Source of the DNA: Epithemia pelagica
Lineage: Eukaryota > Protista > Bacillariophyta
Direction: 5' to 3'
NCBI GenBank assembly: GCA_946965045.2
Contig: OX337234.1
Coordinates: forward strand, 2,542,001-2,606,000
Length of the DNA: 64,000 nt
A program made the position numbers and the translations under genes. Positions 27,338 through 52,937 of this stretch are shown in pieces; positions within the stretch are counted from its first letter, which is position 1; each line of letters opens with the position of its first letter. Under the pieces are notes generated by a model. The model had not been told where the DNA came from. It searched no databases and saw nothing but the letters and a program-made list of their open reading frames with translations.

Positions 27338-28895
27338 CCGACTAGGTGTCCGCTTCTTAGCCGTCCGGCCGCTCTCCGCGACCAATCATTTTTATTTTCG
27401 TTTTTTTTTTCGTTTATGAAGAAAATTTCTGGTCAAAATGAAAATGATCACGCCGGCCTTCTGGATCATCCTTTCGAATTCTTGTGAGAAGCCGTGCGCG
27501 CTTTGACCGTTGGTCTTCCCTTTTCCCTTTCATTCCAACACTCCTCACAAATTTTGTCACTTCGTCTTTTCTCTTTTAGGTGTTTGTCATGGACATGCAC
27601 CATGAACATGCATTCTGCATCATTTGCGTATCACTGACATTCGACATGCAAAGACCATAGATAGTGTTTGGCTGTGCCCCCTTCCCTCCTTTTTCTAGTG
27701 TTCTTTGTTCTCGTGTAGTTCTCGGTTTAAAAGCACACCTTCATCCACATCCGCACACCTTGTTTGTCTATGCCGTAGGCTTGTCTCTTTGCAAGCAAAT
27801 AAGCTTGACCTACTACCACCTCTTTTAGAATGAATCTCTTCCTGCTTGTGTCATGGAGTATGCAGAGTCCCACATGCTGCTGAGAAACACATCATGAGAT
27901 ACTCCTGGCAAAAAAAACGACCAAGAGGCGCAAGTCGACAACACAAGACACTAAAGACTCAAACTGAGCAACAGGTGAGAAAGGAATGGTTCCACTAATC
28001 CTATCTTACTGAGGTTGAAAATTCTACTCCTACGAATGACATGTTAGAAGAATCCTACATTTGATTTTAGCTGCCGCCCATTGAATGGACCAAAAATGGA
28101 TGTTGTACGGCACAAACACTTGAAAGTGTGGCAAAGAAGTGAGAACGTAACCCAAACCATGGTCCATTACACTGCAGGGATTAGGCCGTCCGGAACTTAC
28201 CATGCGGACAAAGATGACATGCTCAGAGCTCAGTAACGAAGCATGAGGCCGTTTGGGGGTTTGGTTTGGTCTCATTTTGTTGCGGCATTGATTTTATGAC
28301 TCTCCTGAACGAACAGGAATATTTTGAGTCTTGTTGAGCAGAACGCCAGCCATCTTACAACTGCCAAATCACGCCAGCCTTTCCAGCCGGATGTGATCAT
28401 TTTTTTCTGGCGGGGAAGGAGTTTTTGGTGAGCAGGACCTGGGATCTGTAATCGAGTACGAGTACCGAGCATAATACTCGAGTAATACTCGAGTATTGGT
28501 GGTAAAATACTCGTACTTCCTCCAAGTTCGACATACAAGTAATTACTCGATACTCTTACTTTCTTCTCGAGTATTACTCGTGTACTCGTACTCATGGATT
28601 CATAATTTGGCAAGTAAGTACTCTTTACTCGTACTCGAGCTCCAACCAATACCCGAGTAGTACTCGAATGTTGCTTCATTGTACTCGAGTATTTCCATTG
28701 CATCACGGTTTGTCCCCACATTTTTAATGAACGACTGTTTGTCCCCACATTTCTAATGAATTTTACACCACCGACCACCGACCACTGTGCCACATGTACC
28801 TCATTCTTTTATTGTCACTCACCAACCATTGGCCAGCCTACATCCTACCTTGTTTGTTTATCATTTGAAGCCTCAACAGCTTCTTCGCCAAAGGA

Positions 28896-31800
28896 ATGGC
28901 TTCATCATCAACACCAGTTTCTGCCATTACAGATCCATCTTTCGAGACTAATAACCCAAGCACATCTAATGCAGGTGGCGCCGCCATGTCAACACCAAGC
29001 ACCTCTTCCGAAACACCGGAAGTGCCTTCAACAATTGAGAGGACTGATACTACAGATCAAGTCTCTGGACACTTGACTCCTGTTGTTTCTGTTGCTGCCC
29101 CTGTTGAAGATCGAAACGCAGCCATCAAAGCAGAAAAAGATTTATGCCTCCTACATGAGAGGAAATCTGAATATTATATGTTCAGCAAGCAGAAGCGACC
29201 AAGTCCAACATGGGATCATTGTCTTCAATTTGATGCTGCAGCTATGTATGCCTTTTTTGAAAGCCTTAACGATGACTCTCGTTATTTGACCCCTACAACT
29301 GGCCTTGGACAAGTCAAGTTATATCTGTATTCCCTGAAGAAACCCAAAAAAGATGGCCCTGATTTTGATTACTCATATAATTTATCCCAATCTCTTGTTT
29401 TATGCAAGCACTGCTTCTATGATGATGGAACTCCGTTGAAACAATGCTTGCACAAGCTACACAAGGGTGCCGTGTCTAATTTTCAAAAACACATCCACAA
29501 GTGTCATTCCAATGTCAAGAGGCTCAGTCTACGCAAGAGTTGTGATGAAACCGCATCAAGGAAAAAATTGAAAACCCTTGATTCATATGTGAAAGTCTCA
29601 AGACAAGAAGACAAAGACAAGGCAATAAAAAAATACCAAGAAAGTTTGCAGACCTTTATAAACGACTCTGCCGTATCTAAATACAACCTTGAGAAGCCAC
29701 GATTCAAAGCAATGATGCAGAATGCGTACAATCTTGTCCATGATCATGGTGGCAGCCCTGAAGACTTGATGATGGGTGTTCACAGATTTACCACATTACA
29801 AGACAAATCTTTCACTGACCAACGCACTGTTATTCGAACAGCCATCCACTCGGTCCAGCTGTGGTTCCAGCATCACACGCCTTCTGCACAAAAGTTTATC
29901 TCACTTTGCCAAGATCTCTGGGATGGCAAACGCCGTGAACTGCTTGGCATTTCCCTCATGTTCATCCATCCAGCGACGATGGCATTTTTTAAAGTATCTG
30001 CCGGTCTTGTCCACAGCAGTGGCAAGAAATCCGACCAAATCTGTGCGGACACTGAGGCTATTCTCAGTCTTTACAACATTTCCAAAAGAGACCTATATCG
30101 CCCAGTGAACGACACAACAAATGCCGCCCTGAAGGCTGGCAGGTTGATTGTTGGTTGCAAGGATTCGGGGACCTGTGGCATGCATAAATGTGAACTCATT
30201 CTCAAGCATGCCACAGGTCAGCTTGTGAGGAAGAAGAACAAGGAAGCTGTAGATCCGTTCCCTATTTTGGAAAATCTTCGAAAGAAGGCGAGGAAGTTTG
30301 CATCGTATCTAATGGATAGAAAATCAAAATCAAGGTACAAGGTATTCCATGAGTTTGTCGTGAACAAGAGGGGAAGCAAGAAAGGTGCGTTGCATTTGGA
30401 ACTGGCAAATGACACGCGTGTATCTGGGACAATATTCATGTACCAGAGTATGGAGAGAGCCTTCTTTGATCTCTACTATTTCCTGATGGATGAAAGCTGC
30501 CCAAAAGAACTCGTTGATCTTCAATTGTCACCCGAGGAATGGCAACAGTTAGCAGAAGCAGAAGCTGTCCTTCGGTCTACACAAATTTTGTCTCTTGACT
30601 TGCAGACAAACATCCCTGGCGCTGTAGCAATTTCTCCTCTCCTTGTATGTTTTGCCAAATCAAAAATCCCTAAGACAAAAGATGACTTTGTGGAGGGCAT
30701 TGTTGTTATTGACAACAACTCACCACCCTGGTGTGCCGCCGATACTCTACACAAAAACCTCCCGAAGACCAGAAGAGCCATCAGTAGCTGTAGAGATGGT
30801 ACTGCGCAGCTGGTGGCTCGACTGGTGAAGAACTACGACGAGTACTTCACCCACCAAGCAGATGACGATTGGATGGCCATGTTCTGCCATCCATTCATGG
30901 CAGAACACGGGATAAGCATTCTTGTCGAAAAGGCAAAGGTTGCAAGTAAAGAAAAGAGAGAGGGCCAGAAGGACAAGTTCATTGATGCAGTTGCAGCAAT
31001 GATCAAACTCCCTGATGATGGTACTATACAAGATACCAGTGTGGGTGCGAATGGAAGTTCCATGTCTCCCACCAATGGACACACCCAAGTGACAGATTCG
31101 CAACAGGAAGAAGACAGTAAGTAACATGTTTGTTAGTGCCCCATACTAGTATGGCATTGTATTGGGTATGGCACTCACAACTTGTTTCAGACATTGAAAT
31201 TGACCCCTTCTTTGATGTCGGGGGTCCAGACCTGTCCACTACAGATGCTGGTGCACGTACTAATATGGTTGCATCTAGAGAGGCTATGGCTAAACAGATG
31301 GCGACCTCTGAAGTGACCAGTTATCTCATGTATGCAAAAACAATGAACTGGAAAGAAGTGATATCAGCCCATCCAAGCCCATTGTTTCAGAGCATCGGCC
31401 AAAAGGACAAAGACTTGCCCTGGACCAGGCAGCTTGTGTCGTATGCGGTTCACAAAAACATTAAGGAGCTGTGGAAGTTATTCGATGTGCTTAATTGGTG
31501 GAATGACTTTGGACGACAGCACTACCCCCATGTCATGATGGTGGCAAGTGTCACGTTGGCTCGGCCATACTCTAATGCACAACAAGAAAGGGATTTTTCC
31601 CTGGCAACTTGGTTCGATGGGAACCTCGTACAAAAACAAAAACCAGCAACTTTGGAAAAAAGGCTGATGACGTGCCTAAATAGAGAGCCTGTGAAGATGC
31701 TAGAGGAAACTCTGCATCAACTTGATCCCAAATATAAAGTGGCAGAAACTGAAGATGAGGATGCCGGTCCAACCATGGAGTCGGCAGATGAGGATAACCC

Positions 31801-31900
31801 GAACAGTACCAGTAGCGAAGATGAAGAGGAGATCGATCAAGCTGTAGACGATATGGATGGTGCAAACAACGAAGAAGGAGACGATATTCTTGGATTTTAG
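28896..31900 (+). CDS. hAT transposase, 2 exons (intron 31117-31190), 976 aa
   Basis: LCKHC..NFQKHIHKCH (BED-like); SLCQDLWDG; VNDTTN; CGMH (CxxH); NDTRVSG; LNWWND..YPHV..SNAQQERDFS dimerisation motif; GTAAGT..TTTCAG phase-1 intron joins two track ORFs. Confidence 0.9.
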
Positions 31901-31935
31901 GTAAATGTTTAGTTATTGTGAGAGATGGTTTGTGG

Positions 31936-33398
31936 TTAGCAGTATGCTTGTTGTCGTGTATACCCGATGCCAATGCTCATACGTAGAACAGAGTTCCATG
32001 TAGTGGGATAAACGGACTTGTGATAAACGTCCGCTCTGAAGATGATAATGTTGCCGTAGTCCAGTGAACAAAAAGTTGCACGACGCTTGACCTTTCCGTT
32101 ACCCCGGTGGCGGCTGCTAAACTCCATTCCACCACCACCAGAGTCTTTGCATAGACCAAATTGGATGATGATCGGGTAGAGGTAGGATGGAAATGATTTG
32201 TTGCCTGCCAGTTCTAATGCATCTTCAACGTCTCCTTCATGAGGCAGGTCAAGGTGGTATCCAGCTTCCTTGTCTTTGGGAGGATCTGAATGCCCTGAAT
32301 GACAAAAAGAGAACGTTTATTGGGGACGAAGTGCATGAGAGGATAGCAAGAAAAGTAGGGACAACATGTGAGTCGAGTGTGTGAAGTGTGAAGAAGGAAG
32401 CAGCAAGAAAAGTGGGGACACATTGCATGAAGTAAAAAGCAAGAAAAGTGGGGACAAAACGTGAGCCGAGTGTATGAAGCAGAGAACAGCAAGATAAGTG
32501 GGGACACATTGCACGAAATAAAAAGCAAGAAAAGTGGGGACAAAACGTGAGCCGAGTGTATGAAGCAGAGAACAGCAAGATAAGTGGGGACACATTGCAC
32601 GAAATAAAAAGCAAGAAAAGTGGGGACAAAACGTGAGCCGAGTGTATGAAGCAGAGAACAGCAAGATAAGTGGGGACACATTGCACGAAATAAAAAGCAA
32701 GAAAAGTGGGGACAAAACGTGAGCCCAAGAACAAAAAAGGTGAGAGACAACGACAGCAGCCAATGGAATAAGGACATGATAATGAGAGTATCAATCTGCT
32801 TACAGCTGAATAGGTATGGCGAGGCCCACTTGTGATGGGGAAATGATTTCTCAATCCACTTCCCAATAATCAGTGAAATCCATTCCAGTTGAGAGTCGCA
32901 GGCTGCTCCGAGTTCAGAGACGGGGCACAAGGGGAGCACAACGAACTGTGCTCCCTTGGTGTGGGCAAATCGATTCCAATGCCTGCCTTCCGCGCAGTGC
33001 ATGGCATCGTAGTAGAGTGTGTCTTGAATTTGGTGGTCGAGGGCATGCTGCATATATGCAAAACCCCTGCTGTTCAGCTGCCCCCATACATCGTCGCGTC
33101 GTACTCTGTAACAGAGATATTTCACTTGGATGTCGCAAACATCTTCAACAAACGGCGTGATCTTGGTTGCCTGTCCATCTGCATTTCTGCTTCGTGGATA
33201 TCTTTCTATATGACTTGGGACAGTAAGTGATTCCATCCATTCAAAAATTGCTTTTTTCATTTTTCGTTGCTTCTTCTTCTTCGCCGATTCATGACTTGGA
33301 CATGTATCAAAGTAGTTCCCTTCACCCAAAGTAAAAAGAGGGTGAGGGCCATAGGGAATCAATGGATTTCTTTTTGTTCGTTGAAGAGAGTTGTTCAT
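31936..33398 (-). CDS. 2OG-Fe(II) dioxygenase-superfamily protein (about 317 aa); exons 33398-32804 and 32294-31936; cargo of hAT no. 2
   Basis: GTAAGC donor at 32803 and CATTCAG acceptor at 32295 join in frame: YLFSWHSDPPKDKEAGYHLD (HxD)..IIIQFGL..GGGGMEF..GNIIIFRADVYH (distal His)..VLRMS (RxS). Confidence 0.72.
32403..32726. repeat. Minisatellite, 86-bp unit, about 3.8 copies, inside the cargo-gene intron
   Basis: GCAAGAAAAGTGGGGACAAAACGTGAGCC recurs at 32439, 32525, 32611 and 32697. Confidence 0.97.
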
Positions 33399-34365
33399 TG
33401 TGCATCTGTTTGATTGCCATTTCCTTGGTGTGATGTTCCAGGATGTAGAACTGGTGCAGGCACGTTGTACGTTGTCCAACGTGGAGGTGGGGGTGACCTA
33501 TGACTCGCGACTAACATGGCGGGATTCTTGGCAAGTACTACTCGAGTATACTCGAGTACTTGCGAGTATATACTCGATACTCATACTCTCTATACATTCT
33601 ATGGACGAGTAATCATTGATACTCGTACTCGTACAGCCAGGAGTGATTCAGTACTCGTACTCGAACGTGTAGGAGTACAGAAGTATATAATGAGTACTCG
33701 TACTCTCACATTTGGGCTGTACTCGATAATCATACTCTAGCTAATTTTAGGTCGATTACTGATCCCAGAGCAGGACAGACCATGAAAGAGTTGACAGGCA
33801 GACCACTAAAAGGCGGACACCTAGTCGGTGCCTTTACTTCTTAAGTTGTAAGGAAATCAAAGTAAAGTACAAAAGTAAAGTACTTTGTCAAAAATGGTAC
33901 TTTGGGCCTTTGAGTCCTTCCCGAGCTCCCACCTCTTTGCCATGCCGAGATGGTTTGTCTTTGATTGCAATGCTAACAGAGCAGAAGGACAAATAGAGAT
34001 AGAACAGTTTTCAGTTAACATTAGATTCGATCAATCCACAGAATAGATCTGCTTCATGTTGTGGGGGGAATAGGGTCACCCTCTTTCCACTCAGAGGTCA
34101 CTGACTTTGCTTCCAAAGAAAGTGGAGGCCGCATCCCAAAGATCCAACTCAAAGAACATTTGCAGGATTCCCGTTGGTCCTCCCTTAGCTCCCCCCAGGC
34201 CTGATCAGGTAGCACCATACAATCAGCCCACGGAGGGAAGGAGGCGGGCAACTCACAAAGAACTTCCAGCCAGAGCCAAAGGAGCAGGAGCCAGTGCCTT
34301 ACCATGTCGGCGTCTGGACATCCTGTTGGTCTCTGTACCCCCCACATCGAAGCCATCTTGTCCTC

Positions 34366-50832: not shown

Positions 50833-52937
50833 ATGCCTCGACAACAGGGTACAGCGAAATCACGAAGGGTGATGAAAGTATCTCCAGAGGAGATCGAGTC
50901 AGAAGACAATGACGAACATGTGTCCGAGGCGAAATCGGCAGAGGAGACGAGGCGGAGGAAGAGGTCAAAGAGCGTGGTGAGACAAGGGGAGAAAGCCAAA
51001 AAGGAACTGAAATCAGGAAACGCGATGAATCGCTCTCCAAGGAAGAGCGATGCAGAAGACAATGCTACGGACGATGAAGATGTCTTTGAGGCGGAATCGA
51101 AAAAGAAAAAGAGGCAGAGGAAGAGTGGTAAGCGCGACGTGAATCAAGGTAAGAAAGCCAAAAAGGTACTGAAATCACCAAAGGCGATGAAACGCTCTCC
51201 AAGGAAGAGCGAGGCAGAACACAATCCTACGGACGATGAAGATATCTCGGAGGAGGAATCGGTAGAGGAGAAGACGCAGACGAAGAGGTTTAAGCGCGAT
51301 GTGAATGAAGGCGAGAAAAGGGAAAAGGAAGCGAAAGCAGGAGAGGGGATGAAAGCCTCTTCAGAGGAGAGTGAGTCAGAAGAGAGCGAGTCAGAAAATA
51401 ATTCTACGGATGATGAAGATTTCTCTAACGTGGAAGCGGTAGAGAAGAAGACGCAACCGAAGAGGTACATGGGCGTTGTGAAACAAGGAGAAAAGGCCAA
51501 AAAGAAACCGAAATCACCAAAGGCGATGAAAACCTTGCATAAGAAGAGCGATGCAGAAGACAATCCTACGGAGGATGAAGAAGGCTCTGAGGCGGAATCG
51601 GTAGCGACGAAGACGGAGACGAAGAGGTTGAAGGGCGTAAAGAAACAAAGAGAGAAAGCCAAAAAGGAACCGAATTCAACAAGTCAGACGACAGCGAGAA
51701 AGAAGCATAGACGTCGTGGGAAGCTGTGTGACGTTGCTAAGGAGAAGTTGTCGAAGAAGACTGACGGACAGGAGAAGAAGTATCCATTGCTGTTGTACGA
51801 CGATGATTCGAAAGATGATGAGTTGAAGCTATCGGTAAAGTCCATCAGGAAAAGAGGGAGTGTGGTATTGGAGGGAATTTTCAAGCCGGAGGAGCATGAG
51901 TTATTGAAGACTCGTGCATTGTTATGTTTCACCCATGAGGAAGTGGACGGAATTTCTAAGCATTGCGAGAATATTGGGCCTATTGTGACTACTAGCGGAG
52001 GCACACTGCAAGTTGAAATCAAGGAGAAAGTGAAGAAAGTCGAAGATGAACGTAAATCAGCAGTTGAGGAGTTGACGTGTCGCATGGAAAAGAGGCTGAG
52101 AACTCTGGCATACATTCTGTACGGGTCACGTGATTGCACGGTCAAGAAGATGTATGTTTGGAAGAAACGAAACGAAGCTGATGCACAATGGCTCCATGCG
52201 GACTCTATGTATCAAAACAATCTAAAGGCTCTGTTGTGCCTGTCAGTCGATGGTTGTGCGGCAACTCAGGTACTTCCGTATGATTGTCTTCATGACAAGC
52301 CACTGCTAGCTTGTCCAAGTCAAAAGACGTTGCGTAATGATACGATACGCGAACGATTCAAGTACCTTTATGAAGTGAGTGGAAGTTATAATTGGTTGAA
52401 GGAAATCTACGATCAGCGGCTGAAACCGGCAAAAGAAGACGGATTTGAATTTGGCGATATGTTTGTGTTTAGTGGAGATGTTCTTCATGCCGGACCAAGT
52501 ACGAAAAACGACCCAAGAGATCGATTGTTTCTGTTTATGACTCTAGATTTTGGTCACACTGCTGATTATCACAATCGTCAGCTGCATCCTGCGTCATTGT
52601 ACGAGGTGCTTCATGGCTGTAACAGCCCACAAAAGCTGAGAGCAGTGGCGATTCATTGTGCTGCAAGGCGGGCAAGCGATGCAGAGGTGAAGAATGCGTA
52701 CGACTGTTCATGGCCGAAGAATTCGACGGGGGGGGGGGGGGGGGGGGGACGTCGGGAGGAATGACGACGGAAGGCCGGAGTACCCTTTCGTCAAGTGACT
52801 CAGCAAAGAAGAAAAGGAAACGAGAAGTTGATGCTGTCGAGCCAGCGCCGCCAACTCTTACGGAGCTCAAGGCAAAGATTGAAGAGGTGGCAGAAGAAGT
52901 GTCGACCTCCGGTGAGGAGAAGAAGGATGGGTTCTAG
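50833..52937 (+). CDS. PhyH-like 2OG-Fe(II) oxygenase with Lys/Glu-rich repetitive N-terminus; probable frameshift in G21 (52728-52748) extends it to 52937
   Basis: AQWLHAD (HxD), FGDMFVFSGDVLHAG, RDRLFLF; about five 55-60-aa repeats KK.LKSPKAMKRSPRKS.AEDNPTDDED. Confidence 0.75.

Follow-up and report, generated by a model that had tools for sequence, protein, structure and literature searches.

Can a DNA transposon of a diatom own a second gene beside its transposase, and could the product of such a gene be an enzyme which serves the element? The question is raised by a stretch of 64,000 nucleotides from Epithemia pelagica (NCBI GenBank assembly GCA_946965045.2, contig OX337234.1, positions 2,542,001 to 2,606,000 of the forward strand), which we call the window and to whose numbering positions refer unless another locus is named. 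An initial annotation made from the sequence had described in it a hAT transposon, here named hAT-A, with intact terminal inverted repeats (TIRs) and target-site duplications (TSDs), an apparently intact transposase and a convergent gene hidden from open reading frame (ORF) prediction. This second gene, with stops only 35 bp apart from the first and a minisatellite-filled intron, was taken to encode a 2-oxoglutarate (2OG)-Fe(II) dioxygenase. Our results point to a mobile element in which the second gene belongs to the element itself, has been inherited together with the transposase and can be passed on as a module. That its product is a very divergent dioxygenase is less certain and is weighed below.

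Two genes within one hAT element

The element is complete and 5,330 bp long (28439-33768). Its 17-nt TIRs, short like those of the hAT superfamily in general, differ by one mismatch, and their pattern occurs at just these two sites in the window, where 0.02 matches would be expected. They are flanked by a perfect TSD of the 8-bp length typical of the superfamily (AGCAGGAC). In two DNA runs of the source organism, contigs connect position 28429 directly to position 33768 and thus preserve the uninterrupted target with a single copy of the TSD. These empty-site contigs are about ten times deeper than the element, from which it follows that hAT-A sits in a repeated sequence whose other copies are empty; the target repeat covers 28272-28438 and 33769-33800. 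A full second copy, 99.5% identical and with the same TIRs, lies at another site (locus L002) within its own 8-bp TSD, CTCGCGCT. Judged by these sequences, hAT-A is an autonomous and recently mobile element. Its termini (28439-28700 and 33649-33768) are about tenfold deeper than its interior in the DNA-run contigs, which suggests many short non-autonomous derivatives sharing the hAT-A ends. A diverged variant of 28572-28694, with 12 differences, is also present in high copy number. An Rfam scan of the whole element found nothing.

Is the second gene real? Its two exons join into a product of 317 amino acids, and between them lies an intron in which Tandem Repeats Finder (TRF) counts some 3.9 units of an 86-bp repeat. 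The length of this intron differs among the three near-identical copies of the gene that we examined: it is 509 nt in the window, 766 nt in L002 and 595 nt in locus L001, where the gene lies in a different element described below. As 86 is not a multiple of three, changes in the number of units would break a coding region; the changes that are not multiples of three are all confined to the proposed intron, and the spliced 317-residue protein is intact in 3/3 copies, with no amino-acid change from the window copy in L002 and two in L001. The same intron is found in far more distant relatives. In loci L003 and L004 it is 89 and 95 nt long, lies at the same place in phase 1 and splits the same TGG codon after a conserved Y-[LI]-F, and position and phase are kept in relatives from another assembly and a metagenome contig that are only 36-47% identical. 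The conserved position and phase, together with repeat variation that spares the product, are our reasons for accepting the gene model: the second gene is real and would be spliced in vivo at the proposed junction, 32804/32294. The element's boundaries, the convergent arrangement and the intact transposase described by the initial annotation have thus held up directly, and the 509-nt intron and its junction have held up by comparison, through the shared split tryptophan codon and the constant product. The promoter of the gene must be internal to the element, within 33399-33751. A metatranscriptome contig of 167 nt (33242-33408) covers the start codon.

Among the three copies, 5/7 variable coding sites are synonymous in the second gene, against 6/17 in the transposase. 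In the comparison of substitutions between copies which the initial annotation had proposed, this excess is suggestive only, the difference from the transposase being non-significant (see below).

The intron repeat has some features of its own. In DNA runs X3 and X4 its sequence words (32382-32743) reach a summed depth which exceeds that of the remaining element by a factor of tens to hundreds; many further copies of the repeat may be present in the genome, or the depth may be inflated by summing over contigs which map to several places. The motif TTTGTCCCCAC has six exact matches in the window, where 0.08 would be expected, and all are within hAT-A: two at 28709-28748 (+), upstream of the transposase start codon, and four at 32448-32716 (-), in the minisatellite. 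Each copy is in the sense orientation of its own gene, and it may be that the motif is a regulatory or protein-binding site shared by the two genes.

The transposase itself, when its single 74-nt intron is removed, is a protein of 976 amino acids with no internal stop. The hAT dimerisation domain (Dimer_Tnp_hAT, PF05699) is recognised in its C-terminal exon with a score of 29.5 bits, the cutoff being 21.4, which places it in the hAT superfamily. The splice model is supported by an intronless transposase of 1,213 amino acids that also bears PF05699 and belongs to the element hAT-B: the two proteins are 29% identical over 758 residues, and their alignment crosses the junction. The 740 residues of exon 1 have no match in Pfam or PDB, so that of an RNase H-like DDE core and a BED finger we can point only to a C-x2-C...H-x4-H stretch spotted by eye. 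The acidic 3' part of the gene (31722-31864) matches a contig of depth 1165 in DNA run X3, with indels and unrelated flanks, and is therefore common to another repeated sequence.

An old partnership and a recent transfer

Has the second gene been with the transposase for long, or was it picked up lately? When exon 2 was used in an exhaustive HMMER search, seven true relatives came up, 34-46% identical (top E 6e-14), and a profile search with the same exon added seven more. They come from the ENA assembly ERZ25042306, whose loci are more AT-rich, and from one JGI metagenome contig, and exon-1 homology is present upstream of them. In seven of the ten divergent loci (L003, L004, L008, L009, L092, L093 and L094) a convergent remnant of a hAT-A-type transposase follows downstream. 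These remnants are 28-50% identical to the hAT-A transposase, a divergence similar to that of the second gene. The most complete relative, L094 6590-11147, has a homologue of the second gene followed by a convergent hAT-A-type transposase which covers residues 160-952 in pieces of 26-50% identity and looks interrupted and decayed. Scans of metagenomes with the exon-2 alignment and the transposase C-terminus, and a tblastn search of phage records, found nothing. Since linkage, orientation and intron are all kept at matching divergence, we regard the pairing as old and inherited, and the sequences support the view that gene and transposase have been partners for a long time in a hAT lineage. The reading in the initial annotation depended on other copies keeping the gene and its linkage; both are kept, the gene in the near-identical copies and the linkage in most of the divergent loci.

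The gene has also moved into another element. hAT-B (L001 7354-14039) is a separate hAT element with the TIR CAGGGTATTGAAGT, the 8-bp TSD AGTGGAAC and subterminal repeats of AAGTCA type, and it contains a block of hAT-A: the second gene in full, together with the 35-bp spacer and the final 95 nt of the hAT-A transposase. The block retains this fragment of the hAT-A transposase, and the direction of transfer was therefore from hAT-A to hAT-B. In DNA run X3 both breakpoints of the block show up as loose ends, and the cargo region is about 2.2 times as deep as the hAT-A transposase. The second gene, then, behaves as a module, and the copying of the block into hAT-B, an unrelated element, is recent. 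With copies that are nearly identical, genes that are intact and a transfer between hAT families that is still fresh, this is a tractable and probably still active system. The coordinates of all features are collected in Table 1.

Table 1. Features of hAT-A and its target site in the window
Feature	Position	Strand	Remarks
Left TSD	28431-28438	.	AGCAGGAC; identical to right TSD, 33769-33776
Left TIR, 17 nt	28439-28455	+	same TIR bounds copy L002
Left subterminal region	28456-28700	.	TACTCGAGTA-type short repeats; repeat families D3-D11, I7-I17
TTTGTCCCCAC motif, two copies	28703-28754	+	~150-190 nt upstream of transposase ATG; candidate shared cis element
Transposase exon 1	28896-31116	+	aa 1-740 and first base of codon 741; BED-like C-x2-C...H-x4-H stretch
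Transposase intron, 74 nt	31117-31190	+	GT..AG
Transposase exon 2	31191-31900	+	hAT dimerisation domain (PF05699, E 6e-7); stop 31898-31900
Block shared with hAT-B, ~1.75 kb	31806-33549	.	~99% identical in hAT-B (L001 7857-9679)
Spacer between convergent stop codons, 35 bp	31901-31935	.	
Second gene, exon 2	31936-32294	-	aa 199-317; stop 31936-31938; carries H212, D214, H290, R303, S305
Second gene, intron, 509 nt	32295-32803	-	phase 1, GT..AG; position and phase kept in L003, L004
Intron minisatellite, 86-bp units	32345-32725	.	TRF array 32389-32725, related units reach 32345; units carry GTGGGGAC motifs
Second gene, exon 1	32804-33398	-	aa 1-198 and first base of Trp199 codon; 100% identical protein in P0002, P0003; distant homologues
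Second-gene 5' region and right subterminal repeats	33399-33751	.	
Right TIR, 17 nt	33752-33768	-	
Right TSD	33769-33776	.	AGCAGGAC; perfect 8-bp copy

The nature of the cargo protein

What does the second gene encode? Enzymes of the 2OG-Fe(II) dioxygenase superfamily have an H-x-D motif, a distal histidine and then R-x-S, whose basic residue stands about 10-17 residues after the distal histidine and binds the C5 carboxylate of 2OG. In the family of the second gene conservation reaches 90% or more in only 22 of 317 columns, which include Y211, H212, D214, L215, H290, S292, V293, R303 and S305, along with W141, F144 and H146 in exon 1. Among the members covering each position H212 and D214 are kept in 8/8 and H290 in 14/14, counts which record the presence of the residues only; R303 is kept in 11/11 and S305 in 10/11. 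The distances of 76 residues from H-x-D to the histidine and of 13 from there to the arginine are within the range of the superfamily. The pattern HxD...H...RxS which the initial annotation had read from the spliced product is therefore present, although its H-x-D is the family-conserved H212-L-D214 (in YHLDLP). The WHSD at the exon junction (residues 200-202) was considered as the metal motif and rejected, as it is not conserved and L004 has DGD there.

A second line of evidence comes from the protein language model Atlas, in which the neighbours of exon 2 are the clusters 2OG-FeII_Oxy_3, HalD/BesD, Oxygenase-NA and PhyH (score 0.89). The homologue in L004, 36% identical, reaches 0.91, with PF13640 in 55 of 100 named matches. 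Taken together, the conserved residues and these neighbours make an Fe(II)/2OG dioxygenase a plausible and, in our estimate, rather likely identity, with a presumed double-stranded beta-helix fold and presumed catalysis. The kinship which the initial annotation had considered with TET/JBP or AlkB enzymes has found no support: neither exon nor any of 15 family members matches Tet_JBP at E up to 10, there is no AlkB-type Pfam match, and hhalign against E. coli AlkB gives a probability of 0.2%. The window also contains an ORF of 643 amino acids at 50833-52764, a putative 2OG oxygenase; a relationship to it was rejected, as it has no similarity to the cargo protein, and nothing in Pfam matches the ORF at E<=0.1.

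A number of results weigh against our reading of hAT-A as the carrier of a dioxygenase gene of its own. Some concern the gene. No RNA read crosses the junction among the contigs matched to the element, which are mostly from DNA runs and include the intron, and the whole of one 116-nt contig from a marine metatranscriptome (X2, no mismatch) falls inside the intron repeat. No spliced 317-residue product is recorded in a collection of 5.8 billion proteins; the collection holds the gene as longer products because ORF callers read exon 1 through into the intron, and public assemblies contain four such read-through forms (394, 411, 447 and 468 amino acids), all 100% identical over exon 1. A search with exon 1 alone and a length window missed these copies, and the read-through ORF used as query found them. 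All copies in ERZ25042306 are pseudogenes with stops or frameshifts; the short contig L004 is intact over its extent. The excess of synonymous sites over the transposase is not significant (Fisher p 0.18). Could there then be no second gene at all, the ORF pieces and splice sites being chance features? The lack of transcript evidence and of any annotation would fit this, but it is contradicted by the protein-level conservation of both exons and of their junction in divergent loci, and by repeat changes that fall in the intron and nowhere else, and we find it hardly credible. Another possibility is that a host metabolic gene was passively captured not long ago (transduplication) and does nothing for the element. 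In its favour, fragments of host genes are known to be taken up by DNA transposons, hAT elements among them, and the block freshly copied into hAT-B shows that capture happens. Against it, we found no host paralogue in the window or in the protein collection; in other genomes, where the proteins are 36-50% identical, the gene is still linked to the transposase, with its orientation and the place of its intron unchanged; and promoter, intron and complete ORF are all borne by the element. This explanation is largely refuted, and we consider it very improbable.

The remaining results concern the enzyme. Searches of Pfam, NCBIfam, PHROGs and PDB sequences, with single sequences and with profiles, on each exon separately and on family members, gave no significant match to a 2OG or any other family. 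Comparison by hhalign with E. coli YbiX, with a 39-sequence profile of the YbiX family (from 80 loci) and with AlkB gave no match. AlphaFold models of exon 2 from the window and from L004, built on 15-row alignments, have a mean predicted local distance difference test (pLDDT) score near 52 and disagree with each other; the folded fragments comprised exon 2 and so had neither strand I nor any of the N-terminal part. Foldseek searches with these fragments returned nothing at E<=0.001, only non-significant beta-sandwiches, and Atlas scores near 0.9 are leads only. The placement by fold and clade suggested in the initial annotation thus came to nothing significant, and its dioxygenase assignment is supported by the conserved residues and the language-model neighbours. 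Is it possible that the gene is real and owned by the element but encodes something else, for example a beta-rich accessory protein such as a transposition cofactor or a DNA- or chromatin-binding factor, in which the H, D, H and R serve another purpose? The failure of every homology method to link the protein to the 2OG family, a fold that is not established and Atlas scores below the level which excludes chance all agree with this. However, the residues and spacings of the facial triad and of RxS are invariant in a family of about 35% identity, and two divergent members independently retrieve the very 2OG-Fe(II) clan that the motif had predicted. We therefore think an accessory protein of this kind rather unlikely, and return to the dioxygenase. 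For the whole reading, a mobile hAT-A with a divergent dioxygenase of its own that is co-inherited, modular and probably mark-modifying, we put the probability at about 0.6.

We propose the following model. hAT-A would carry a transposase and a two-exon gene of its own, the two having been co-inherited through a long-diverged hAT lineage. The cargo gene, transcribed from a promoter in the right subterminal region and with its 3' end facing that of the transposase, has as its most likely product an Fe(II)/2OG dioxygenase of very divergent sequence, in which H212, D214 and H290 are the proposed metal ligands and R303-x-S305 the proposed binder of 2OG. By analogy with the DNA transposons of fungi that bear TET/JBP enzymes, the protein probably modifies a mark on nucleic acid or chromatin to the benefit of the element, perhaps by countering silencing based on methylation; both the substrate and the benefit are drawn from that analogy. 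Perhaps the cargo even represents an unrecognised Fe(II)/2OG clade, found only as cargo of diatom hAT elements, unrelated in sequence to TET/JBP, swapped as a module between hAT families and acting on marks of the element's DNA or chromatin so as to oppose silencing; it would then belong to a toolkit against silencing independent of the fungal one. Taken in full, this wider proposal is tentative and, in our judgement, quite unlikely.

Comparison with known systems

To our knowledge, dioxygenase-carrying DNA transposons have so far been described for fungi only, and with TET/JBP enzymes only. If our reading is right, and a hAT transposase is stably paired with an unannotated dioxygenase-like protein outside TET/JBP in a diatom lineage, the strategy would have arisen more than once, and the protein would be a new family of enzymes which might act on 5-methylcytosine, N6-methyladenine, RNA or histone marks. 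The gene was overlooked by ORF-based annotation, and such cargo may therefore be under-counted in algal genomes. An anti-silencing role is a reasonable suggestion by analogy, as young transposons of a model diatom are kept in check by methylation of cytosine (PMC9998398).

Several likenesses to known gene capture and known enzymes should be mentioned. DNA transposons of the Pack-MULE type hold gene fragments captured by transduplication; like them, hAT-A carries coding sequence other than a transposase, and the hAT-B chimera is a fresh acquisition of foreign DNA. In contrast to them, the gene in hAT-A is complete, has its own promoter and intron, is conserved along with the transposase and has no detectable host parent. 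The prolyl-4-hydroxylase-like PF13640 family, HalD and the PhyH oxygenases share HxD...H...RxS with compatible spacing and are the nearest language-model neighbours, but there is no match to them by hidden Markov model or profile-profile comparison, and the 198-residue N-terminal part of the cargo protein has no recognisable relative.

The closest parallel is in fungi, where Kojima (2025) reported eleven lineages of DNA transposons encoding TET/JBP dioxygenases, among them hAT7 in the rust fungus Puccinia and others belonging to KDZ, IS3EU, EnSpm, Harbinger and Helitron; the genes have often been transferred between transposon superfamilies, without terminal signatures, and a role against silencing was proposed (PMC12730594). 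The concept of dioxygenase cargo is thus already known, and the statement of the initial annotation that no hAT equivalent existed is outdated by the hAT7 elements. What is shared with the fungal transposons (PMC12730594) is a DNA transposon bounded by TIRs and TSDs with an intact, here putative, Fe(II)/2OG dioxygenase gene beside the transposase, the signature-less movement of this gene between unrelated families, and the suggested escape from methylation-based silencing, which is a proposal in both cases. The differences are that the hAT-A cargo has no match to Tet_JBP or any other family, that the host is a diatom and not a fungus, that the TSD is 8 bp rather than the 7 bp of the fungal system, and that the cargo lies downstream of and convergent with the transposase, whereas in hAT7 it lies upstream in the same orientation (PMC12730594). 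Provided that the cargo is a dioxygenase, hAT-A belongs among the dioxygenase-bearing DNA transposons, with an intact gene inside its TIRs and TSDs in several copies. New here would be the host group, a protein family recognised by no library, a convergent and intron-bearing architecture kept over long divergence, and a fresh transfer from one hAT element to another.

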